A DNA stretch of 64,000 nucleotides. Source: Ascidiella aspersa. Taxonomy: Eukaryota. Positions 5,846 through 50,366 of the stretch are shown in pieces. Numbering within the stretch: the stretch's first letter is position 1; the number at the start of each line of letters is the position of its first letter. The notes below the pieces were generated by a model. That model ran no database searches. It saw nothing but the letters and a program-made list of their open reading frames with translations, and had not been told where the DNA came from. The position numbers and the translations under genes were made by a program. Location: contig OZ004613.1 of assembly GCA_963924565.1 (NCBI GenBank), positions 26,846,001-26,910,000 of the forward strand, in the 5' to 3' direction.

Positions 5846-7525
5846 TTATGTAATCACAGTTGGACTTTCGCGGCCAGTCAGTTCAGGAATTTGCGAGACG
5901 CTGAGAGCAATTTGAACCAGAGGATTAAGAACATCGGAAGCTGCTGATGTCAGAATTGAATCTTCTTTTGCAACGTAGCTATCGACGTACATACGAATGG
6001 TGGCACCACTACTACCAGTTCCGCTAAGGCGAAAAATGATTCTCGACCCGTCGGTGAAAATGATTCGGATTCCCTGTTTTTCTGTGACCACTTTATCGAT
6101 TGGGTCCACGTAGCGGTAGTTATCAACCTTTTCAACTGTGTACGATTTTCCAGCGCCAGTTAGTACCTTCCCACAAAGCGAGTTGTCGTTTATCGCAGCC
6201 GTGAGATTCTCCATCATTGTATTGGCGGCTTTGCTATCGACCTGTTCATAGTCGTACCTTGTGAAGCAATTTCTTCCGTACTTCTTCCAGTGGCCTATAA
6301 TGACGTCCTCGACGGACAGCTTTGTATGCGCAATGATTGACAGCCAGGCGAGGGCAGCCCACATACCGTCTTTCTCACGAATGTGGTTAGAACCAGTTCC
6401 AAAGCTCTCTTCTCCACACAGAGCAATCTTCCCTGCATCCATCAGGTTCCCAAAGAACTTCCATCCGGTCGGAACTTCGAACAGAGGAAGGCCGGTACCC
6501 TTGGCAACCTGATCAAGCGCTCCACTAGTGGGCATACTCCGTGCAAAACCGGTCATTGGATTCTGGACAAAATAAGGAATTGCTTCATAATTTGCAGCGA
6601 TAACAGCTAAAGAGTCGCATGGAGAAACAAAGAAGCCATTCTTTCCGATAATCATGTTCCTGTCACCGTCACCATCAAACGCAACACCGAAATCATGCTC
6701 TCCCTTCTTCATTTCATTCACAAGGTCAGCGGCATAAGTGAGGTTCGGGTCTGGATGACCTCCCCCAAAGTCCTCCAATGGAATGCTGTGGATACAGGCG
6801 TCTTTATTTGCTGAAAGCTCATCACAGATTATTTGGGTTGCGTAGGGACCCATCACACCATGAAGGGAATCAAATCGAACTTTAAAGCTGCCGTCCTTTA
6901 TCAAATCACGGATGGCATCAAAGTTGAAAATACTTTTCATCATTTCGACGTAATCCTGCACACTGCTGACAACTTCAACCTGGAAGCTACGTCCGCCAAC
7001 TGTAAATGAGTGACTGCCAACCTTTTCAATGTCAACATTGAGCGCTTCGCAAAAATTGAAACTCGTCAAAGATTTGGAGACGGCGTAAATCTTATCGGTT
7101 ACACTCGAAGGAGCAGGGCCTCCATTTGCAGTATTAAACTTAATTCCAAAGTCGGCATTCGGACCTCCCGGATTGTGGCTTGCTGTGAGAATAATTCCAC
7201 CAACAGCCTTGTATTTCCGAATGAGACACGAAATAGCCGGGGTGGAAAAGATTCCCGACAGGCCGATTATAAGCTTGCCAACGCCATTTCCCGCAGCTAT
7301 TTTAATGATCTTCTGCACGGATTCCTTCATGTAGTAACGGCCATCGCCGCCGACTATCAAAGTACAGCCCTCCCTCTGCGAATCGTCGATACTGGACAAA
7401 ATGGCCTGGATAAAGTTCTCGGTATAGTTCGGCTTGCTGAGAAACACCTGGGTGCCTTTGCGAAGTCCGCTGGTGCCTGGTTTCTGGTCGTCAAAAGGCG
7501 TTGTTTGGACTTGTTTTACCTCCAT
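5846..7525 (-). CDS. PGM1: Phosphoglucomutase-1, single coding exon (559 aa)
   Basis: Uninterrupted ORF with N-terminal [11 protein letters not shown], catalytic phosphoserine loop TASHNP, metal loop FDGDGDR, sugar-binding [16 protein letters not shown] and C-terminal PTVIT. Confidence 0.97.
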
Positions 7526-21700: not shown

Positions 21701-24700
21701 GACACGCATGACCACAACTCAACTTGGGTGAATCCCCCCGTAAGCTCAATCCTTGACAACACAACCAGCATAGCTCGGCCTCATTTGCGAGACCGCGGCA
21801 TCGTTGGCGGACGCGCGAGAAATTGGCCGACCGATTACTATTTACTGAAGAGACGGCGGCGTTGGCGACACGCTTGTTTGTTGAATGGCTCTTAACAATT
21901 CTTGAAATTCTAATTTTTATTTCAAGCGCGCTTTCGACCGTTTCCTTTTTTTATATTTAATCGCGCAAATTTTTTTGTTTGTAGAATTCAATAAAATCGT
22001 TTTATATACTAAACAATTGGCGACGCGAATTTCGTTAATGACAGTGCCCAAAATTACAATTTTTTGTGAGTGAAATTGTAAAATTTATATTTTCGTATTT
22101 TCATTGCGCTTTTAACCGTATCCTTTCTATATTTAATCGCGCAAAGTTTTTTTGTAGAATTCGTTTTCATATACTCAACAGTTGGCGACCAGGGCTGTGC
22201 GCGAATTTCGTTATTGACAATGCCCGCAATTGAAATATATTTTTTTAACGGTAAAATTTATATTTTCGTATTTTTATTGCGCTTTAAACCGCAACCTTTT
22301 TTATATTCAATCGCGCAAAGTTTGTTATTTTGTGGAATTGAAAAAACTCGTTTTATATACTCTACAGTTGGCCAGTAGGCCTGTGCGCGAATTTCGTTAT
22401 TGACAATGCCCGCAATTGAAATATATTTTTTTTAACGGTAAAATTTATATTTTCGTATTTTTATTGCGCTTTAAACCGCAACCTTTTTTATATTCAATCG
22501 CGCAAAGTTTGTTTTTTTGTGGAATTGAAAAAACTCGTTTTATATACTCTACAGTTGGCGACTAGGCCTGTGCGCGAATTTCGTTATTGACAATGCCCGC
22601 AATTGAAATATATTTTTTTTAACGGTAAAATTTATATTTTCGTATTTTTATTGCGCTTTAAACCGCAACCTTTTTTATATTCAATCGCGCAAAGTTTGTT
22701 TTTTTGTGGAATTGAAAAAACTCGTTTTATATATTCTAAGTTGGCGACTAGGCCTGTGCGCGAATTTCGTTATTGACAATGCCCGCAATTGAAATATATT
22801 TTTTTTTAAACGGTAAAATTTACATTTTCGTATTTTTAAAGGCTTTTATATTCAATCGCGCAAAGTTTTATTTTTCCGCATTCAAAAAACTCGTTTTTAA
22901 ATACTCATCAGTTGGCGAAGGCGGTCGTGTGCTAATTTTGTTAAAACGGGGTCGGACAAAATATTGAATGATAACAATCCCCAAAGTATATTTTGTTTGT
23001 CGAACGATAACAATTGCCTAAAAAAATAAAAAATGATTATTTTTAACAACACAATGCGTAGTTAGTTGACCGGGATGAAAATTAGCTGTATTTTGTTTGT
23101 TTGTTCCGCTAAATACGCGCGAAGTCGCAAAAACGTTTGTACGAGTTTGAGCTAAATTGATATTTTTTTCAGTATGATTTAAACCTTGGTTAAGCTTGTT
23201 TCATGATGCGCATGTTTTATTTTATACGTTAACTCGAAAATTTCCCGCACTTCCGTGTGTATCATCACCCAACGCTAAAATAGCTTTAATTATTCAGCGA
23301 AGCCCTGGATCAAAGTTTAGAGCACTGGGTTAATGAAAATATCGATTGGAACGCTCAAAACGTGGCATTTTGCGATGGATTTAAAGCGAAAGTCGTTTCG
23401 TGAGATCAACACATAAGCGAAAAATACTGTATAAAGATCGTACATACAGCGCCGCGTATGCTTGGGTTTGCTGAAAGAAAGCGCACTGGCCTGAAAACGA
23501 ATCGAACAAAAGCGTGTCTCGCTGCCCAGCGCAGTATTGCCAGAATCGCTCTTTCGCGATGTCTCCGGGCCCTGGCGAAAAGCAACGGGCTGGCACACAA
23601 CACACTCACTCATTCGCATACAGAGAGGCAGCGCTGAAGCCTTCATGCCTCGCGTGTCCTTTCAAAAATAAAAACGAACCACTGCCGACTTCCTATTATT
23701 CCTCCCTCAACCGCTCCCCTTTTCTCTTTATTCTCTCGACCTCTCCCGCTCTTTCTGCCTTAATGGTCGATTGTCCTCTCTCGCCCTTTCTCTTTTTTTC
23801 TCTCGACGTGCTTCTCTCTTTTGTAGCGGGGAGCGCCGTTCTTTTCCCTTTGTCCTTTTTTAGTGGCGCGGCTGGTTTTGCTTGCTTATGGCGTATCTCG
23901 TCGCTCGCTTGGCTTGACTGGACGCTCTCTCTGGCCTTTTCTGACAGAAACGCCTATACATTAGGCAGCGGCCGCGTTTCGACACAACACACAAGGCTGC
24001 TTCTCTCTGGCCACCAGGCCTTGTTTCGCTACACGCAGCAGTCTTTGTTAAACAACCCGACCATTCGCACAGTGCGCGCGCTTGTGTTCCTTTTTATGTC
24101 CACGTCGCTAGTTTTGTGTGAACGCGCTCTGTCGTTGAAAGGAAGACCGTATCCAAGCGCTGACAGCAACTCGAAAACGTCATGTTTAGATGTCCGCGCA
24201 AAAAGCCTATAAAACGTCATATTTTTTTCTGTTTACCGCTGCCTTTCAGTATCGCGTTTCGTCATTCGGCCGTTTTTGCTTTTCGGGCCAACTGGTGAAC
24301 CGTATCCGTGAGTTGTTGCTTTTTCTTTCACGTAAAAACTCACCTGTTTACCAGAAGCTCTCGAGGGTATTTCTATCTTTGTTCGCTGGGGAAAAACAAA
24401 ACGAACGTGCATTTAGGAAAAACAACTATACCCAGTATACAAGTTTAGTTTTTCTTCAAGAAAATGTTTTTTCTTGGCCTCTAAAGCTGAACGTTTTATT
24501 AAAAAATAGTCGCTTTAATTATTTCTGCGTTTTGCGTATATGCTTACCAGTTAAATATTTTATTCACAATACGTATGCCTAAAAAACCCAAAACCTCTCA
24601 AATGACAGCGTTTAATGTTTAGACATCCCAAACCTGTCATTTGAATAGGAAAAGGATCACAATAGACGCGTGATTTATTTTTACACAGCTATTTTATGGC

Positions 24701-39700: not shown

Positions 39701-42700
39701 TTATAACTCTATATCAGGGGTAGGCAACGTGCGGCCCTTTTCCATTTTTTGTGCGGCCCTTCACCTTCTTCCAGCTATTTTTCCCTAAATAAGGGAAATT
39801 TTGCTCTATCAGTTTCTTGTTTGAATCGCGATGTAACCCATAGGCTGCAACGCTACACTAATGCAGTTGAACTCGAAAGCATCGGTTACAAAACAATCTT
39901 CATTCATAAAGTTTTACTTCTGTCACATTGTTTTGATAAAGAATTGTTTTGCAACAATTACACTTGGCTGGTACGATCAAGATTTAACAGACTTTTGCCA
40001 CGCATATCGACTTTGACTGAGATGGTATGTTTAACAGATGGTTTTGAATTAAGGATGTTAATTAAATTGTACTGAGCCGAGTAGCTCATTAGTTTTTCTA
40101 TTAAAAGCTTAAAATATAAATTAGTGTTTATTTGATATGCGGACCTTCTGTAAGCATTACATTGCCTAACTGGCCCTTGTGTTAAAAAGGTTGCCCACCC
40201 CTGCTCTATATGATCAAGATTGTCATACATTACCATAAATTATTTCATTTTTATGCATTGTGAAAAGAGTTAAGAAAACTATAAACTCTTTAAAGCATTT
40301 GTACAGCAGAAAAAAATAATTTTCTCGCTTCGTCAGTCCCTAGAATGAAAATAAATTCACCTTCTCAAAGCTATATCTAAAAAATCGCTTTTTGAAAAAA
40401 CTGTTCGGCCAAATTTAACCCATATTGAGATGCTCACCTAAGCAACCCGTTTTTGTTGCAGTGGGCGTTACGGAGGCGTGGCGTGTGATCATGGCACTAA
40501 AGAGCGGCTTACTAGTGGAAAGTACTTGGGCTCTAAACGCCCTCACCATCTTCCTGTACGACGACCAAGCCGTCCGACAACTGAAGCTCTCGCAACTACC
40601 AGGGCTGCTCGACTGCCTAGTCGAACATTACAGGTAGTGATTTACTTTAAACCAGTTCTTGTTGACCTGCAGAAATTTGTTAGAGGGGCGTATCTTTTTG
40701 GAATCCAAAACCATTGGCAGCAGGTTTCTGCTTGTCGATCACTGTTCCACTGACGCGTATATAAACAATAAAACTCAGTTTTAAAAAACGAGTAAAGGTC
40801 GACTGCCTAGTCGAACATTACAGGTAGATTTTTGAAATCAGTAATTGTCAACCTGCAGTACACTACGCAAACCTTCTTAATTTGATAGAAGGGCGTATCT
40901 TTAAGGAATCCAAAACCGTTGGCAGCAGGTTTCTGCTTGTCGATCACTGTTCCGCTGACGCGTATATTAACAATAAAACTTTTAAAAAACCTGAGTAAAA
41001 CCAGGATCAGACATTTTTTTAAGGAATATATATACAAATGTTTCATTCGAATTATGGAACTGACGATGTCAGTATAGGCGAAATTTACTAAAAACATTTA
41101 CGAAAAGTAAGTTCTTGTAAACATTGTTTTTTTGAGGGACTCCAATGATTTTTGGAAATTGTTTTACCAAGAAATCTTCACATACTTCAAACAGTGGCGG
41201 CCAGAGGTCACCAGACCCAACCTAGAAAAACCTGCTTGTGAAAACAGCTGTAGGTTGTGGTAGTAGCAAAACACACGGTTGTATAAAATCAGTAAGGTTC
41301 GGGAACCACTAGGTCAAAACAGATACAAGGCAACCTGGGAAGTTGAACGCTTCCCGGCTCTGCCTGTGTGATGCTTGGAGCGCCTCTGTAGTGGCGTAAA
41401 GTCTTAATCACAGTATCAAAAATCATCTCACGTCCTATTTCTTCTCTCTGAATTTTCTCGACAATTGCGTCGGGTGTTTAGATGGAAGAATTATGACCAT
41501 GGGCCATTGCATATTCCTTTCACGTTGCATAGATGTTACACATCTGTGAGTGCAGAGTGAAACCATGCAAGGGACATTTGAAATCCTTTATTTATAAACC
41601 AGGGTTATCACAATGATGTAAATAATCTTGTAAATGAGCAATAAATAGTCTTTTAAAAACTCGGTTTTAAGTCCTTGAATAGTATTTGAATATATTTTAT
41701 GTCCTGTGTATGCTATACGTTTAGAAACTACCTTAGTAACGCCAATTTAAAATATTTGTTATTATATTAACCATGACATTTATACTGTTTTTTTCGAATG
41801 ATACTTATAAGCACGCCATATTATCCAATTTTAGGTCTTAAAAATCCATAACTTTTTTAGAAAAGTTAGTAAATGTCTTTGAATTAAGTTGATAAAAATG
41901 GGTAGCAACCCCGCAAAATATCCTATCTTTATAATCCACATGTTAAACTCCGTGTTTAGCAATGATAATTATCGTCTAATTAAAAAAAATCAAAACACTT
42001 GACTCTTCACAAACTGCTTTTAACAAGTCTTGAGTTCATAACAATTCAGTTTACAATAAGCGCGCGTCAAAATATGTCAGCACCACTCAACAACGATTTT
42101 CTCTTTCGACAGACGCTGTCTGGCCGAGCTTTTCTCCCTTCCCGGCGAAACGGAAGCCCTGGGTGTGACGTCACAAAAGGAGGGCGCGATCAAGTTGGAG
42201 GGGGAAGGGGAGACCGGGGCCTCGGACACGGAACCGGAACCGGATTACACCTTCACCACGAAACCCCACAAGCAACGCGGAAGGAAAAAGAAAAGTAAGT
42301 GTTGTGCTTTTTTTGTTCACTTTGAGTGAGCCATGTTTTTTGTTTAATTTTTTAGCCGTTTTTTATTTTAATGTAAGGTAATTTTTTTTATTGTTCCTTT
42401 CAAGTTATAGAATTTTATTTTAAGGTAAAAATGTTTTTTTTAAGTTATTCCTTTCAAGTTTTAGAATTTTATTTTAGGGTGAAAATATTTTTTTAATATT
42501 CCTTTCAAGTTTTAGAATTTTATTTTAAGGTGAAAATGTTTTTTGAATATTCCCTTCAAGTTATAGCCGGCTCATGTTTTACTTCTTAAAAGCTGTTTCA
42601 AATTTGACTTTTACTTATATTAGCAATTCTTTTCTTTTAATTTTTATGTAATTATTTTAATTTTATAGTGATTTAGGATGTTGGTTTTTCACTATTTGGC

Positions 42701-45700
42701 AGTGTTGTAAACAAGTCATTTAAAAAGTACTGAAGTCCCAGTCAAGTCATTATTAGAGCAAGTCAATTCCAAGCCAAGTCCTTGTCACAAAAGTTAAACG
42801 TTAAACTATTCGAATGGGTAAATTCGTTCGATTAGCAGCAATAAATCAACTAAAAAAAATCACAAACGCAATTAACAGTCAAAAAATTGTTTTTAACCCA
42901 ATGCTTAATAAAACATTTCCCAAGTCATTTGTTCAAAAGACTTGAGTCAAGTAAAGCCATTTAAAAACAGTGACTTGAATGCATTTAAGTCTAAAGGCCC
43001 GTTTACACTACAGCTGCACTGAGCTGCACTGGGCGTGAAATTGTTTTCACTTCAGCTGCAGTGAGCTGCGCTGGGCGTAAAAATCGCTCCAAACGTAATG
43101 TGTTTCTATAGCTGCACTGGGCTTGAGTTTAGCAAAGCGTGGAAATCGCTACAAAGCGTATTTTTAAGCTAGCTGCAGCTGCTGCACGGGGCTTGAGTTT
43201 AGCAAAGCGTAAAACGCTCGCCACAATAGAATTTAAATGCAAATTACGCTTTGCTCAGCTCAGTGCAGCTGTAGTGTAAACGGGCCTTAGTCAAGTCAAG
43301 TCATTGACTTAGGTCAATTACAAGGTCACGGATATTCCGCTTATATAACATGTATAGAAAACTTACTTTAACGTACTTTCATCCCTATTTTTTTTAAAAC
43401 AGCACTAAATATTGCAACGCTATGCTTAACAGACATAACTGCATTTAATCAATTGTTTTTGTTTCCAGACTGCGTGATTCCGTCCAAGTATTGTAGCAAG
43501 TTCACCAAACTGCCAATCAAGATTGAACCGAAGACAGACACCTTCGTCATGGATAAATCGCACCAGTGGGACTTCGCTCACCAGGTACTTGAAAAATGTT
43601 CCCTGAAAATGTTCTTTGGCAAACCGCAGCTCGTTTTGCTGTTTCCTATATTTTTAAAATTTTTTTTTTTTATTTTAAAAAATATAAAAAAATACAATGA
43701 ATCGGTAAAATTTTTACGAAACGTTTATTTTGGGGTTTGTTGTTTTAATTTCATCTTTTAGTGCAAACTTTAATACAAAGTAATGCAAAAACTAATTAAG
43801 GTTTTGGAACGTAACGATTTGGAGGTTGTAGCAAGACGTAATAAGAATATTTCGAATTTTCAATTTTTTGGGGGTTATTCCAATTTTTTTCAAAAAAACG
43901 TTTTTTCTACCGTCAGATGGATCTTACCGACGACTTATCGCACATCGTTCTGAGTTTCGCTCAATCCTCGAAAGTGCTAAAGCCAATAGAAGACGAAAAT
44001 CAGAAAGAAGCGGCTCATCCAAACCTGGACGAGTCCACTGTGGTTGTCGAGGCAACCCTGGAGGATGTCCTCTCAATCCCCTGCTCCGTCCTCTTCCCGG
44101 ACGAGTACGACATCCACAAGACCTCCATGACCTCCATCTTGGAAGACACACAAAAGAAGGAAGACGTTTCCTCTGAGCAAAAAGAGAGCAAATCGCTAAA
44201 GACCGCCCTTGTAAAGAAAGTAGATGATGATGATGTTAGCGAGAAAATTGAAGCGCTTAAAAATGAAATCACGAGCGGTGACATAACGACCAAAAACCCT
44301 GACGTCATTGACAAGCTAAATGACGTGACTAACAAGGGCGACGATCTAAAATTGCTCGACGAGAGTAAAACGAAAAACGGTCTGTCGTCGAGTCCCGACG
44401 CAATGAAGAGCAAATCGAAGAAAGTCATCGAGGAGATAAAACTCAAGGAGGAAGTAAAAAAAATGGAAGTGGCTCCTCCGATGTGCAACGGCGTCCAGTC
44501 CGACGAGGGATCAAGCGATGAACACGCAAAGGAAGATTCTGCTGAAGTTTCAAAAGACACAACCGATGCTCCGAAGGAAGCTGATAAAGAAGAGGAAGAA
44601 AAACCGATTGAACTTAAAATCGAAGCAACGACAGACGAGAGTGACGCAGTTAAAGCTCCCGAGAAGGTCTCTGAGCAATCCGTGGATGTTGTGATGGCTC
44701 CTACTCCTTCACGAGTCCGCTTTCGAGTCGAGAGCGTCCTCAAGGAGCGCAACGTGGTCCTCCTGGAAGACGAGGTCCTCGGAAGCGAGGGAACGATGTC
44801 GGACGCTCTCTCTGGATCCGTGGTCGCCTCCAAGACCTGCTCCCGGTTCGAGGAGCTCTCCCAGCGCGCCCAGTGCATCTCAAACATCATCCGCGGTCTT
44901 TCCTTCATCCCCATCAACTGCTCCGACCTCTGTCAGCATCGCAGCCTGATGCGCGCGCTCTCCGGATCCCTCTTGTTACGTCACAAGCACCGCACGCGCC
45001 CGCGTCACGTACAACAATCGGACGCGGCGGCCAACTTCTTAACCTCCGAAGGCGACCATTTCCCCTCTTCCGCGAAATCACCATCCGTGCCGCGATACTT
45101 TGTCGAGTCTTCGGACTTCGCCGCTAAGAAAACGCGCACCTCAGAGCTCTTCGCTCCCAGCGACGATCAGATCGCTCCTTCCGGCAAAAAACGACCGCGT
45201 TTTAGCATCACCGTTTATGACGAGGAAGACAGGGATACAGCAGAGGCGTACAAGAACCCATGGTGGTGGGATTGCGTCCGTCGCATCCGGGAGGACTCCC
45301 TGGTCATCCTGTCCAACATCTCTCCAGCCCTGGACCTATCCAAGCTGCCTGATGATCACACGGCGCTCGCGGTTATCGAGGCCTGTCTTCATTGGACCGT
45401 TTGTCCTTCTTCTGATGCCTCGGACGCATTTTCAAGCAAATCAAAGTAGGTTTTTTAGTTTTACAATGAATTGGTGGGCAGTTTATATTGGGATCGCATA
45501 AGGAACAATTTTCTATCACTCAGTTTAGAAAATTTAAGCATTAATTTCCATGTTTTACAATTTGAAAAATATATATTAGTTAATTTAGAGTAAGACGTAG
45601 TAAGAATGTTTTTACGAACAGTTTATATTAGAGTAGTCTGGCAAGCAATTTTATTTTTCAGTTATGAAAATTGATTCCAAAAGTTAGTTTGTTTTCGTGA

Positions 45701-48700
45701 TTCACAATTTGGGAAGAAATTAATAAACTAATTTAGGTTTTGAAGCATAATGGTTAGAGGTTGTAGTAAGACGTAGTACACTAACTATGTCAAAGCCCAT
45801 ACAGAAGTACGTATTATTTTGATCGTTTCATTTATCTCTTTCTCCATTTTCAATATCAATACAGAGTTATTCGAAACGTTTACAATTATGACCACTTCTG
45901 TGTGAGCTCAAATATTCTTACCAATTTAGCTTTAATTTCTGTGCTCTGTTTTGGTTTGTTTCTTACTAAACTAACCAAACACTTCATTCTGCAGGAATTT
46001 CGTGTCGCCGCAGCGCCTTGCTCTGGAAATTCTCACCAAACTGACGATAAAAGAACACAACATCGATCTTATTCTCGCTACTCGACCCTTCAGCAGGATA
46101 GAAAAGCTGTTCAACTTTCTGGTAAGTCGTGAAACTAATTTTTATCTTAACACTTTTGGTCATCATATATTTAACATAACAATTAAGTGTTATAATTGAA
46201 CTTAACATTCGGTCTTCCAACCCGAAAAGGTAACCAAAAAACATTTTTTTCTATTAAAACCTCGTTCTTTAGTAAATTTTTACAAAGGAAACGAATTGAT
46301 TTATAAATAAACTGTAAATACCGTAATACTGCAGTTTACATGATTATATTGCAGTATGTACGTTTAAATACGCTCGTTTGCTAAATAGAAAAAGTGTGCT
46401 ATTTCACTGGCCATTTTCGTTTGAGCTGTTGCATGGCATCTATAGTTTGCGTGTTCATGTAAACTCTTACTTGCAAGTTTTATCAACTAAAATCCACAAT
46501 TTAACATTTATCATCGATATTTTGTGTTGGTTTCACTGAAATGGAAACTATTTTTCCACCAGCGTTTTTGAACAACAACCGCAACAAAACCGTTTGCAAC
46601 TCTTGTTGTTTCAGGTCAGCTTATTGTGCGACCGCAAGGACCAAGCTATGCGCGAATACTCGCTCGTGTTGCTATGCAACCTTTCGTCCGGTGACGTCAC
46701 TGCTGCGCGCGCAATCGACCTCCAGAAGGGGGCGCTACCGGGCCTCATTTCGTTCCTCGAGGTACGCCGAAATGTTTTTTGCGTTAAGCGATCAATTAAT
46801 TGTTTTGGGTTGTGTGCTGTATTTTAAAACGTATAGAAGTTGTGGTTAACCTTTTTTACCTGGTGGATGGATCCTTTTTTTAAATTACTGAGCACCTTAT
46901 TAATATTTATAACAAAGAAGATTAAGTAGGGTATGCAGTCCTTACCAACTTTCAGCACCCATTTAAACTACTTCCTAGATGTTTTTTTTATTTTGTTTAT
47001 GAGTTGTGCACCCTGTGTTACGATTGTTCAGTCGAATAACTTACTACTTTCGTCTCTGAAGACTTAACATTCAAAAAATTCCAGTTTAAATATGTAGTCT
47101 GTAACGCAAAATTAGCTTTACCGCCGATTTTAAGCCCCGCCAAATATTTTCTTTCCAATTAAAAACGTACGAAAAACGGGTTTACGTAGTACAGAACTTC
47201 TCGTATATTGGCCTAAAAATGCGTCTTTGTTTAATGCTTGCCGCACTTTTTAACGACCGCTAATTTTCACAGGAATGCGAAGAAACGGGTATGTCGAACC
47301 GTCGCATGTTCCCCGCCTCGAGTATCAACTGCGGGACGACCCCGTTCATGATGTACAAGTGCGCCGCCACCCTGCACTCACTCGCACAAGTCTTGGAAAA
47401 CAAGTGAGTAAAAAACATGTCTTTATTGGACTCCTGCCGTAAGACTGAAATAAGAACAACATCTCCATCGAAAAAATATCAAAATTGGACTAATACATAT
47501 ACGTAATAGTCGTATCAACGTCTGCATATAATTAAGTCCTAATTACGTCGAAATAAGACCTAAATGGCCATCTCTCTGTTGGAACTTCCAACTTGGAAGT
47601 GTTGGTTCATCCTTAAAATTTATTTATCGCGGGGTGAACCATTCGCCAGTTTAAGAAAAACTGATTACGCACGCTAACACAAGGCAAATGACAAAATATT
47701 ACGTTACGCTACTCAATTTGGTCCAGTAACTATTATTCCGATATTACGCTTAGAATACGCGGTTATATTTTATGGGGACGTTAACGAATATTTTTAGTTG
47801 AAAACATTTCTCTCTGTAATATGGAAATTGTTTTTATTTTTTGAAACTTACAATTTAGTTTTTTTTTGTGGTTTACGTAACACAATTTTGTTTTTCCTGT
47901 TTAAAAAAACTTTTGGTCAATACACCATCATCAGTGAAAAATAAGGGAACGATTTCCTCAAACCGATTTTCTTGTTATGTCAATAATTTTAAATTTCTGC
48001 TTGTGAATCCCAGCTGTAGGTTGTGTAGTAACCAAACACGTGATTGCAAGCGACTACAAAAACTTCGGGAATCGGGAACCACTCATTTAAAGCGATAAAA
48101 TGATACAAGGCAGCCTGGGAAGTTGAACGCTTCCCGGCTCTGCCTGTGTGATGCTTGGAGCGCCTCTGTAGTGGCGTAAAGTCTTAATCACAGTATCAAA
48201 AATCATCTCACGGCCTATTTCTTCTCTCTGAATTTTCTCGACAATTGCGTCGGGTGTTTAGATGGAAGAATTATGACCATGGGCCATTGCATATTCCTTT
48301 CACGTTGCATAGATGTTACACATCTGTTAGTGCAGAGTGAAACCATGCAAGGGACATTTCATATCTTAAATTGTTACAAGAACTTTTAAACCTAAAATTA
48401 CCAATCAAGAATGGGACTTTTAATAAAAAAAATATATTTTTTAAACAGAATATAATTCGGGTACACTATGCACGGATCTCCAATATAGCTTGATAATGAA
48501 TTGCAAAGCCAAAAAGGTCAACGAGACCGACATCATCTTGATTGAGACGTTTAGATACGAGCTTGCATTATCTTCAGTTAATGTGACTGATAGCAACTCA
48601 ATTGCCTTCCACCCTTTATATATGTGATTCTTGAATGTCTTCTCAGTTACATGAACTAAAGAGAAAGCAAGTTTGTATCGAAACGTCTCAATCAAGATGA

Positions 48701-49022
48701 TGTCGGTCTCGTTGACCTTTTTGGCTTTGCAATTCATTATTAATTATCTATTTCGTTTGACACTCCTTTTTTTACCAAGACCACCGTAGTTTGAGCTTGG
48801 GGTTCTAGGTATGTTTTATGAATACAAACTGTCAGCGAAGAAAATTTAGTTTTGTTTCTGTGATATTTAATATTCCATTTTGTATTTTTCAGACCTGGAT
48901 TTGTAAAATACCAACTTCGACTGTTGTCATTGTCTATGTCACAATTGCTACCACCCGAAGTCACCACGACCGTTTCATCCATCCTTTACGAAATCAGCCA
49001 TGACGGTGGTTCCTTGACTTGA
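15079..49022 (+). CDS. ARID1: AT-rich interactive domain protein 1 (ARID1A/B, Osa, BAF250), 25 coding exons, ~2248 aa
   Basis: Manually assembled exons: 15079-15732, 27313-27468, 28306-28473, 29156-29288, 30085-30312, 30680-30922, 31510-31704, 32443-32499, 33339-33498, 33999-34458, 34932-35132, 35933-36093, 36681-37382, 37686-37842, 38219-38326, 38604-38926, 39431-39537, 40462-40633, 42113-42294, 43469-43584, 43917-45445, 45995-46121, 46615-46761, 47273-47403, 48893-49022. All introns are GT-AG and the total is 6747 nt in frame. Diagnostic motifs: TPTLNQLL, the ARID domain, [29 protein letters not shown], and [16 protein letters not shown]. Boundaries in the P/Q-rich exons are less certain than in the conserved ones. 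Confidence 0.93.
21935..22945. repeat. Tandem array, ~186-bp unit, ~5.5 copies
   Basis: Anchor GCGAATTTCGTT recurs at 22025, 22201, 22387, 22574 and 22760; central copies nearly identical, outer copies diverged. Confidence 0.92.
26290..27060. promoter_or_regulatory. Intronic CpG-rich island, candidate alternative ARID1 promoter
   Basis: GCAGCCAATCAG (CCAAT box, ~26380), CACGTG (26408), TTTATTACATCAAAG (26476) and TGACGTCA (26551) lie about 0.8-0.9 kb upstream of exon 2. Confidence 0.5.
28058..28264. mobile_element. Representative copy of an abundant ~200-bp palindromic (foldback) MITE family
   Basis: Arms GCATAAT(A/G)GTT..GTAGTAAGAATATCAAAGCCCATACAGAAGTAGG and their reverse complement. Other full or partial copies at ~19059-19222, 25326-25487, 27960-28055, 28510-28558, 36140-36270, 36588-36650, 43822-43850, 45742-45921, 61078-61235, 63237-63390. 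Confidence 0.8.
29871..30049 (+). mobile_element. tRNA-derived SINE-like repeat
   Basis: GTAGCTCATTTGGTAGAGCG A box and GGTTCGAA B-box remnant; body homologous to the reverse complement of 1511-1735. Confidence 0.75.
31539..31616 (+). repeat. CAA/CAG repeat encoding 26 consecutive glutamines in ARID1 exon 7
   Basis: 78 nt of mixed CAA/CAG codons in frame. Confidence 0.95.
34932..36093 (+). CDS. ARID1: ARID DNA-binding domain exons (34932-35132, 35933-36093)
   Basis: EPGRREF...[21 protein letters not shown]..|[48 protein letters not shown] aligns to the ARID1-type ARID domain. Confidence 0.95.
39715..40203. mobile_element. hAT-type MITE in ARID1 intron 17
   Basis: TIRs CAGGGGTAGGCAAC / GTTGCCCACCCCTG; perfect 8-bp TSD CTCTATAT. 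Confidence 0.88.
41322..41579 (+). ncRNA. SNORA73: H/ACA snoRNA U17/snR30 (SNORA73) copy 1, in ARID1 intron 18
   Basis: The 3' hairpin TTGCAT..ATGCAA encloses m1 ATATTCCT (41511-41518) and m2 AAACCAT (41560-41566) and is followed by ACA+3 nt (41574-41579). The 5' domain is closed by GATAC/GTATC, and CCTGGGAAG..CTTCCCGGCTCTG resembles vertebrate U17. Candidate H box AAATCA at 41420-41425. Confidence 0.88.
42390..42565. repeat. Minisatellite, ~52-bp unit, ~3.5 copies
   Basis: Repeated ttcctttcaagtt(a/t)tagaattttatttta.ggt.aaaat.tttttt. Confidence 0.75.
42700..43325. mobile_element. hAT element (8189-9083 family, opposite orientation) interrupted by a younger MITE
   Basis: Starts CAGTGTTGTAAACAAGTCATT; aagtc repeats; homology to the reverse complement of both ends of 8189-9083. 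Confidence 0.65.
42994..43288. mobile_element. PIF/Harbinger-like MITE
   Basis: 33-bp perfect TIR AAGGCCCGTTTACACTACAGCTGCACTGAGCTG; internal repeats of gctgcac.gggc; the superfamily is inferred from TIR style only. Confidence 0.75.
43917..45445 (+). CDS. ARID1: ARID1 large exon 21 (charged low-complexity region plus start of BAF250_C)
   Basis: 510-aa open frame containing [35 protein letters not shown] and LHWTVCPS, typical of the BAF250 C-terminal domain. Confidence 0.95.
48102..48359 (+). ncRNA. SNORA73: H/ACA snoRNA U17/snR30 (SNORA73) copy 2, in ARID1 intron 24
   Basis: Identical to copy 1 except 3 substitutions in 258 nt; same m1/m2/H/ACA elements; similarity between the copies stops abruptly after ACATTT. 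Confidence 0.88.
48493..48740. mobile_element. Foldback/MITE palindrome in ARID1 intron 24
   Basis: About 58-bp perfect inverted repeat (ATAATGAATTGCAAAGCC..GAGACGTTT) extending imperfectly to ~100 bp per arm. Confidence 0.8.
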
Positions 49023-50366
49023 CAACGTGACCCCACGTAACCCCTGGGCGGCTTGTGACCCAGGGTAACCCCCGTGGGCCGCGTGGGCGAACGTGACACG
49101 GCATTGAGGTTACTGCCGGTCACCACGAATTTGAGAGTTTCAAGAAATGTGCGTTTGTTTGTTTTTTTCCCCTTTTTTGCCCCGCCTCTCTCGCGGTCAC
49201 GTGATATGCATCGCCCCCTTTTTCGTGCTGCTTCTCTCGCTTCGGGCTTGTTTCGGAATCCCTGCTAATTTTTTGTGCGATTACTGTGAAACAGCTTTTC
49301 CCTTTCTTATCAAATGAATTTTTTTGAAATGAAATCTGCTTTGAATAAAATGTTTCTCTCGGGTCAACGATGATTCTGTCGCGCGTCACGACTGTGCAAT
49401 AATATTCCAGAGTCTTTATATAAATCGGAAATCAAACCGCAACCTTTTGTTTTTCCTGAAGGGCGTCAAGCCCAAATTTGCGCAGGAGACATTTTCTCCC
49501 CACCCCTCCAAAAAAAGAAAAAATGTTCATGCGAATACACAATGCTACAAACAGAAAAAAAGATGGCTCTATTTTGTGTATGTGCGTCCATATGCGTTGA
49601 CTTTTCCTCTGCGGCATTCTTTTTCCCCACCCCCCGTATACCATTCGCCGGTTTCGCGTTCGTTATCTCTATTCGGTTCGTTTCTTTTCCCCAAGTTTTA
49701 GTTCAAGATTATCCATTTTCGCGCGCGCTCGTGTGTTTATTATTATCTCTTGTGTTCGTGACGCGTTTTTCGTGCCATCTTCCATTGGCGAATTGCCGGC
49801 GCCTTGATACCGGTTGAGTACCCGGACACAGGCTCTCACTCCCTTATTTTCCCTCGTTCTTGTTTATTTTTGTACCTCATGTTACATTATTAAAACGTGC
49901 AGGACGTCCCTAATATGCAAATCGCCCCGGCAAGGACGCTTTTTGGTGATATTGGATGGCTATTACTGCTGCTACTGCTGATGGCCACAGGGTGCACAGT
50001 AAGCTATTTAGATTAGAGAAGTAGAGCAGAGTTAAGAGGAGTATTTGAGTGACCTAGGGAAACTTTTGTAACGTTTTTAAGGAGTTCGCTAAATTTTTAC
50101 CAGGAATAGTATTGGGTTGGGATATTTTTGTGAATCAGCAGGCCAGAGTTGTTCCTACTTTTTGTATACTTGGAAATTATGTGAGAGCAGCCGCTGGAGC
50201 TTTTGTGTTGTTGCTAAAGTAAATAATTTCGCGACAATGTTTTAAAATTAGGCAACTATTATTTCATGTAATGCGATAAAAGGATGACAATATATATATT
50301 TTTTTTTTTTCGGGTGGGCAGATTGCCTTAATCGCGATGCGGTATCAAATTTATTATTCAAAGATA

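Follow-up and report, generated by a model that had tools for sequence, protein, structure and literature searches.

Do the small RNAs carried in the introns of a chromatin-remodelling gene tie ribosome production to chromatin, or does the gene simply house them? The question is raised by a 64,000-nt stretch of the Ascidiella aspersa genome (contig OZ004613.1, positions 26,846,001 to 26,910,000; hereafter the window), in which a 258-nt block lies in two introns of ARID1. A sequence-only reading had proposed that the blocks are U17/snR30 (SNORA73) H/ACA small nucleolar RNAs (snoRNAs). U17/snR30 docks via its m1 and m2 motifs on expansion segment 6 (ES6) of the 18S part of the pre-rRNA, and is required for the early cleavages that release 18S rRNA. 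We found that the assignment of both blocks as genuine genes of the ascidian U17/snR30 orthologue is well supported by their motifs and predicted structure. The presence of U17 in ARID1 seems to be an ordinary switch of host within one lineage, and not a link between chromatin remodelling and ribosome production.

Identity of the two intronic blocks

Copy A occupies positions 41322-41579 and copy B positions 48102-48359, both on the + strand and offset by 6780 nt. The two align over 258 nt without a gap and differ at three sites only, where A, T and G at 41333, 41433 and 41548 of copy A stand against G, G and T at 48113, 48213 and 48328 of copy B. Their identity is 98.8%, and both end in ACA plus 3 nt; the coordinates and difference count of the sequence-only reading were thus reproduced. 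When the window was compared with itself at the fixed 6780-nt offset, identity was 93-100% within the block and 20-35% outside it. The similarity begins at the first base of the predicted mature RNA and fades within a few nucleotides past ACA+3, and the sequences downstream of the two copies are unrelated to each other.

Upstream, the copies have in common a flank of about 90 nt on the + strand (41233-41321 beside copy A, about 48012-48101 beside copy B) with 82.7% identity and several indels, which we read as the decayed remainder of the unit that was duplicated. A genome search with 41215-41321 returned its own location only, in a search insensitive enough to miss even the 83%-identical flank of copy B. 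Because this flank has diverged to 82.7% identity and yet the block differs at only three of 258 positions, the identity of the block goes beyond chance (P ~1e-17 for three or fewer differences at the flank identity). Two of the three differences fall in unpaired columns of the predicted fold; the remaining one, at 41433, is in helix 8, for which support is weak. Purifying selection or gene conversion has presumably preserved both copies.

Both copies carry the motifs that define U17/snR30. The m1 motif AUAUUCCUU (DNA ATATTCCTT) lies at 41511-41519 in copy A and 48291-48299 in copy B, and the m2 motif AAACCAU at 41560-41566 and 48340-48346, all on the + strand; both motifs are invariant in all six members of the genomic family described below. 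The ACA box (41574-41576 and 48354-48356, +) stands 3 nt before the conserved block ends, and a candidate H box, AAAUCA (41420-41425 and 48200-48205, +), follows 2 nt past the 5' domain (helix 1). The end of copy A reads, in order, m2 (AAACCAT), the 7-nt GCAAGGG, ACA and TTT up to 41579, with ATATTCCTT 40 nt upstream of AAACCAT. In every one of the six family members exactly 7 nt separate m2 from ACA, and a 7-nt distance from the m1/m2 element to ACA is reported to be invariant in eukaryotes and needed for 18S processing (Fayet-Lebaron et al., PMC2664660). The last m1 base is U in the ARID1 copies and A in human U17. Variation at this position is on record, and Caenorhabditis elegans CeN96, which at 221 nt is shorter than the 258-nt ascidian copies, has the same m1 AUAUUCCUU and the same m2 AAACCAU (PMC7601244, Table 1).

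We compared these motifs with the 18S rRNA of the same genome, whose ES6 contains GGAAUA twice, at 808 and 816, and UGGUUU once, at 842. The m1 core UAUUCC can pair with GGAAUA and the m2 core AAACCA with UGGUUU, over 6 bp each, and the 34-nt spacing of these rRNA motifs (rm1 and rm2) equals that from rm1 G802 to rm2 U836 in yeast (PMC2664660). The rRNA motifs are nearly universal, hence this pairing is a consistency check and does not discriminate. Complementarity to 18S beyond m1 and m2 showed no excess, with six helices of at least 10 bp against a shuffle mean of 4.4. The hinge of copy A at 41432-41441 (GUCCUAUUUC) can pair over 10 bp with 18S 816-825, beside rm1; copy B has a mismatch there.

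Covariance-model searches used the Rfam SNORA73 model RF00045, which has a curated gathering score of 74 bits. At the gathering threshold Rfam gave no matches in the window, and genome-wide nothing reached 74 bits with RF00045. Below the threshold, the model aligned over its full length (model positions 1-219) to 41321-41579 with 38.1 bits (E 7.7e-8 on 600 nt searched). In the genome-wide search copy A scored 38.1 bits (E 9.3e-6) and copy B 36.3 bits (E 3.0e-5). The top five matches were the five intact family members (42.1, 38.1, 36.3, 30.9 and 30.2 bits; E 7.4e-7 to 1.5e-3); the best was a paralogue on another contig, C5, and no locus outside the six-member family scored higher. Since the intact members rank first genome-wide, the six-copy family is the U17 of this genome, if the genome has one that resembles known U17 RNAs. 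The covariance-model check suggested with the sequence-only reading therefore came out in part: there is a significant full-length SNORA73 match at 38 bits, and it lies under the curated 74-bit cut-off.

The predicted fold gave further evidence. The block folds better than its own shuffles, with a minimum free energy z of -5.6 and none of 200 shuffles as good. A consensus fold of the six paralogues contains 70 pairs, with standard pairs in 93% of cells and compensatory double changes in 12 of the 70; none of 500 shuffles reached this level, and registers slid against one another paired at 34-46%. In the predicted layout, GAUAC/GUAUC closes a 5' domain that encloses two stems; then come an A-rich hinge and an internal hairpin that varies, and the conserved 3' hairpin is last. 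In this last hairpin m1 (AUAUUCCUA-like) and m2 lie on opposite strands and flank a covarying distal stem, although the consensus fold leaves m1 and m2 unpaired only in part. This layout agrees with the published description of human U17 (PMC7601244), in which two 5' stems, an H box (in the ARID1 copies a candidate) and an internal hairpin precede a 3' hairpin with m1 and m2 in its internal loop. Human U17 also has the same m2, the same 7-nt spacing and the same ACA+3 end; at 207 nt it is shorter than the 258-nt ARID1 copies, which have a larger variable internal hairpin. Together, m1, m2, the 7-nt spacing, ACA+3 and the covariation support the earlier assignment of the blocks as U17/snR30-type H/ACA RNAs, with copy A resting on the RF00045 match, the fold and paralogue covariation, and copy B on its own RF00045 match and its three substitutions relative to copy A.

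ARID1 as the host gene

To place the copies in their host, ARID1 exons were translated and searched one at a time. An ARID domain match marks the exon at 34956-35174 (+), and the exons at 44853-45440, 45993-46127 and 46591-46773 (+) hold the sole BAF250_C matches in the genome. Because there is no other BAF250_C locus, ARID1 is single-copy, and the gene in the window is the only ARID1 gene of the genome. In the protein library, Phallusia mammillata (68% identity) and Ciona intestinalis supplied the closest matches, both ARID1A-like. The Phallusia protein matches eight exons in collinear order, at 40461-40634, 42111-42314, 43468-43587, 43914-45407, 45999-46127, 46597-46761, 47264-47404 and 48891-49001. 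An uninterrupted run of about 26 glutamines in the + frame at 31494-31766 probably belongs to another ARID1 exon.

Copy A lies in the intron at 40634-42112 (+), whose splice sites read GTAGTG...GACAG. The exon upstream of it (40461-40633, +; 84% identity to Phallusia ARID1A-like) ends in DCLVEHY and a split Arg codon, and the exon downstream (42113-42314, +), placed by the Phallusia alignment, continues with RCLAELF. Copy B lies in the last coding intron (47404-48892, +; GTGAGT...TTTCAG), between the penultimate coding exon at 47264-47403 (+), which is supported by the Phallusia alignment and RNA depth, and the last coding exon at 48893-49022 (+), which ends in a stop codon, aligns with Phallusia and has an RNA depth of about 12. 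Both copies are thus sense to ARID1 and intronic, as had been claimed from the sequence alone, and the GT-AG introns that hold them lie between exons collinear with the Phallusia protein. On the exon map the two host introns are six introns apart, which agrees with their earlier numbering as 18 and 24.

Copy A starts 688 nt and copy B 698 nt after the first base of the host intron, and both end exactly 533 nt before the last intron base (41579 to 42112; 48359 to 48892). Homology of the whole introns was considered as the source of this equal distance and rejected; no similarity was found outside the RNA and the ~90 nt upstream of it. Since a high-copy repeat occupies the downstream part of the intron around copy B, the equality is probably a coincidence. 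Very high-copy short repeats are present in ARID1 introns at 43700-43899, 45700-45899 and 48300-48899, where DNA word depth was 10,000-70,000 compared to ~100 in the flanks; these belong to dispersed families with the common core ATCAAAGCCCATACAGAAGTAGGTA. The repeat at ~48440-48740, just downstream of copy B, is palindromic, and both of its strands encode the same peptide.

A six-member family and its hosts

A DNA search covering the 308-Mb assembly found six copies of the block: the two in ARID1, three on contig C5 and one on C7. The search for further U17 loci called for earlier accordingly added four, and with six copies in the genome the block is not a high-copy dispersed repeat; being such a repeat had been named as an outcome that would overturn the assignment. 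The C5 copies (17464352-17468185, +; 17.464-17.468 Mb) are ~1.8 kb apart, are 71-81% identical to the block, and keep m1, m2, the 7-nt spacing and the helices. They are in sense orientation between exons for two RRM domains and an exon matching the low-complexity/M9 region of hnRNP A1; the hnRNPA1_LC match (PF11627) has E 0.002 and 18.8 bits, below the Pfam cut-off, and we call the predicted host hnRNP A-like. Genes of the hnRNP type are common and typically highly expressed snoRNA hosts. With three intact paralogues in this gene, ARID1 is not the sole U17 source.

Upstream of two of the C5 copies, at a distance of 40-60 nt, there is a good 5' splice site preceded by a short reading frame rich in Tyr, Arg and Asp, an arrangement that suggests tandem duplication of an exon-plus-intron unit. 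We asked whether the blocks upstream of copies A and B are a relic of such a mini-exon preceding the C5 copies, which, if real, would have shown DNA transfer from the hnRNP-like gene. This was rejected, as local alignment scores against the C5 flanks were at the level of shuffles. The sixth copy (C7:5156774-5157008; 5.157 Mb) is 70% identical to the block, is without the 5' stem and reaches 18 bits with Rfam; it shows how a decaying U17 copy looks in this genome. Its 3' flank has 45 nt in common with that of the third C5 copy, including the hairpin GCTGCC-CCGTGC-GGCAGC, and the copy lies near LRR-like exons.

Comparison of the same introns in related species, another check that had been proposed, was run on one relative. 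Its ARID1, found on three metagenome contigs from one organism and 56% identical at the protein level, has the same eight exons with both introns present, at 110 nt (matching the intron of copy A) and 884 nt (matching that of copy B). Searches with Rfam and with the motifs found no U17 in these two introns or in the surrounding 20 kb. Because the orthologous introns of the relative are without U17, the insertion into ARID1 is lineage-specific. The pair probably arose by lineage-specific duplication into ARID1 and then within it.

The host of U17 is known to vary from species to species; mammals have U17 in U17HG, frog and fish have it in a gene for a ribosomal protein (PMC7601244), in agreement with the account of vertebrate hosts given by the sequence-only reading. 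Human U17a and U17b (SNORA73A/B) occupy introns 1 and 2 of U17HG/SNHG3 and, like the ARID1 pair, are two sense copies in two introns of one host (PMC7601244, PMC1687206), although the human host is a non-coding gene with a 5' terminal oligopyrimidine (5'TOP) tract and ARID1 is a protein-coding chromatin remodeller. In Xenopus laevis U17 occupies all six introns of the ribosomal protein gene S8 (S7), and in Fugu it is found in S7; the spread over several introns of one host points to intragenic duplication (PMC7601244). The ARID1 pair and the three C5 copies in the hnRNP A-like gene resemble these multi-intron arrangements but differ in that neither host is a ribosomal protein gene and the family is split over two hosts on different chromosomes.

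Sense copies of U17 also occur in introns of unrelated genes, with cow U17C in TBCD and a rat copy in Pdia3 (PMC1687206). Like the ARID1 pair, these are lineage-specific and sit in genes unlinked to ribosome synthesis. In contrast to these U17 retroposons and duplicates, the ARID1 copies have no visible poly(A) tail or target-site duplication, and look constrained rather than decaying. Because ~90 nt of upstream flank was co-duplicated between copies A and B, duplication at the DNA level fits better. A recent survey regards many such pairings of snoRNA and host as passenger relationships (PMC13736004). In our literature searches we found no description of ARID1 as a U17 host and no ascidian U17.

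Proposed use of the ARID1 copies and rival readings

RNA evidence came from one stranded paired-end cDNA run from the same species, of which ~6% was read. The reads cover ARID1 exons, including 47300-47499 and 48900-49699, in the orientation expected of a + strand gene, but they are sparse, with a depth of about 1-12. Among the splice joints listed, none came from this run. Three other read runs behaved as genomic DNA; one of these, labelled as a second organism, holds 48218-48376 with one difference.

We think it likely that the ARID1 copies are functional U17 genes that are co-transcribed with ARID1, processed from its introns, and contribute to a U17 pool that the hnRNP-like cluster supplies as well. 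What this reading takes directly from observation is the sequence identity of the two blocks, their motifs, the covariation of their structure, their intronic sense position, the size of the family and the lack of U17 in the orthologous introns of one relative; expression, processing route and function are the parts that we infer. The U17 copies would be transcribed as part of the ARID1 pre-mRNA, and the H/ACA core proteins would bind them on the nascent intron. Splicing and debranching, followed by exonuclease trimming, would then yield an RNA of ~258 nt with its 3' end 3 nt past ACA, and this trimmed U17 would enter the nucleolar U17 pool. Most likely ARID1 acts as a passenger host, with no regulatory role.

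Several observations weigh against functional ARID1 copies or against their assignment. The depth of the RNA run was zero over 47500-48299, with no reads over the copy B snoRNA. Zero reads over copy B fit silent copies and a library that loses small non-polyadenylated RNAs alike; selection for poly(A) or for size, if applied, would each have removed a 258-nt RNA that has no poly(A) tail. With Rfam the copies reach about half of the 74-bit gathering score, and the H box aligned by Rfam is AGAUGG (41480-41485), which breaks the ANANNA consensus at position 6. The alternative hexamer, AAAUCA/AAAUUA, lines up in five of the six paralogues and is absent from the other, and an ANANNA hexamer easily arises by chance. 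The covariation comes from only six related sequences, from which the structure itself was derived. Lastly, gene conversion between copies 6.8 kb apart could maintain their likeness without selection.

One rival explanation holds that the ARID1 copies are silent or near-silent duplicates, pseudogenes or passengers, that functional U17 comes from the hnRNP A-like cluster, and that the likeness of A and B reflects gene conversion or recent copying. This would fit the contrast between hnRNP-type genes, typical high-expression snoRNA hosts, and the sparse ARID1 reads (depth 1-12), the lack of snoRNA reads in the RNA run, the top Rfam score of a C5 copy (42.1 bits), and the U17-derived copies known from unrelated mammalian introns (PMC1687206). 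However, the high identity of A and B is confined to the RNA predicted to be mature, and the flank common to both has dropped to 83% and acquired indels, two of their three differences are unpaired, and relative to the C5 copies the pair maintains its helices by compensatory changes. Every functional motif and the 7-nt spacing are intact in both copies, and decay looks different, as in the C7 copy at 5.157 Mb with its broken 5' end and 18 bits; we consider silent duplicates unlikely. The copies might instead be independent capped transcription units within the ARID1 introns, with the upstream blocks at 41233-41275 and 41299-41311 as promoter. Yeast snR30 is independently transcribed and capped (PMC7601244), copies A and B retain partial similarity over the ~90 nt upstream, and the 7-mer TCGGGAA occurs at -23 (A), at -30 (B) and at -22 upstream of U1. 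Chance alone would give about 0.6 shared 7-mers, however, and the flanks show no significant similarity to the regions upstream of U1 and U2; these regions have no clear element common to each other or to the A and B flanks, and a small nuclear RNA (snRNA) promoter element could not be defined for this genome, which leaves the comparison neutral rather than negative. The upstream blocks are not common to the C5 paralogues, and a genome search with limited power to detect diverged copies matched them nowhere else. Each copy has the orientation of its host, and U17 was exonucleolytically processed from introns where this has been tested, in Xenopus oocytes and HeLa cells (PMC7601244). We consider a promoter of their own unlikely.

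The remaining alternative is the proposal of the sequence-only reading, that hosting by ARID1 is functional and couples 40S production to how a SWI/SNF subunit is transcribed and spliced. In its favour, two copies are present in the single ARID1 gene, both kept intact, and both end exactly 533 nt before the intron end even though the remainder of the introns is unrelated. In a stronger form, ARID1 would be a selected host whose two introns supply a substantial share of U17, so that output of the SWI/SNF subunit co-varies with 18S processing capacity and the 533 nt are a positional processing requirement; we regard this form as scarcely credible. The coupling proposal as such is also highly improbable: intact paralogues reside in another gene, the same introns of the relative are without U17, and snoRNAs, U17 among them, are well known to change hosts, as a rule neutrally (PMC7601244, PMC1687206, PMC13736004). 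Our literature searches found no paper linking ARID1 and U17. The inferred link between 40S production and SWI/SNF thus gave way to the other intact paralogues, the U17-free relative and the published variability of hosts, while the snoRNA assignment behind it stood.

With ARID1 read as a passenger host of probably functional copies, the main value of the locus is a well-supported U17/snR30 annotation for an ascidian and an improvement of the Rfam model; because the curated threshold misses these copies, tunicate sequences would improve the SNORA73 model. The six-member family, with its two protein-coding hosts and compensatory changes, is a small natural data set for U17 structure and a further example of snoRNA host turnover. 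If the ARID1 copies were the main U17 source, an essential processing snoRNA would depend on a dosage-sensitive chromatin gene.

Other features of the window and genome were recorded alongside. Upstream of ARID1, 5846-7525 (-) is an uninterrupted 559-amino-acid phosphoglucomutase-1 frame with all four PGM domains; it is apparently intronless, whereas the rest of the region is intron-rich. A tandem array at 21967-22919 consists of about five copies of a ~187-bp unit with 75-98% identity. On C5, full-length 18S genes lie at 13 widely separated places between 8.80 and 14.52 Mb, on both strands and in no tight array; these places are best candidates only and may sample a very large or mis-assembled rDNA region. 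On the same contig (C5:29506093-29578111), a 1193-bp unit with alternating U2 and U1 snRNA genes recurs in tandem at least 40 times, always on the same strand.

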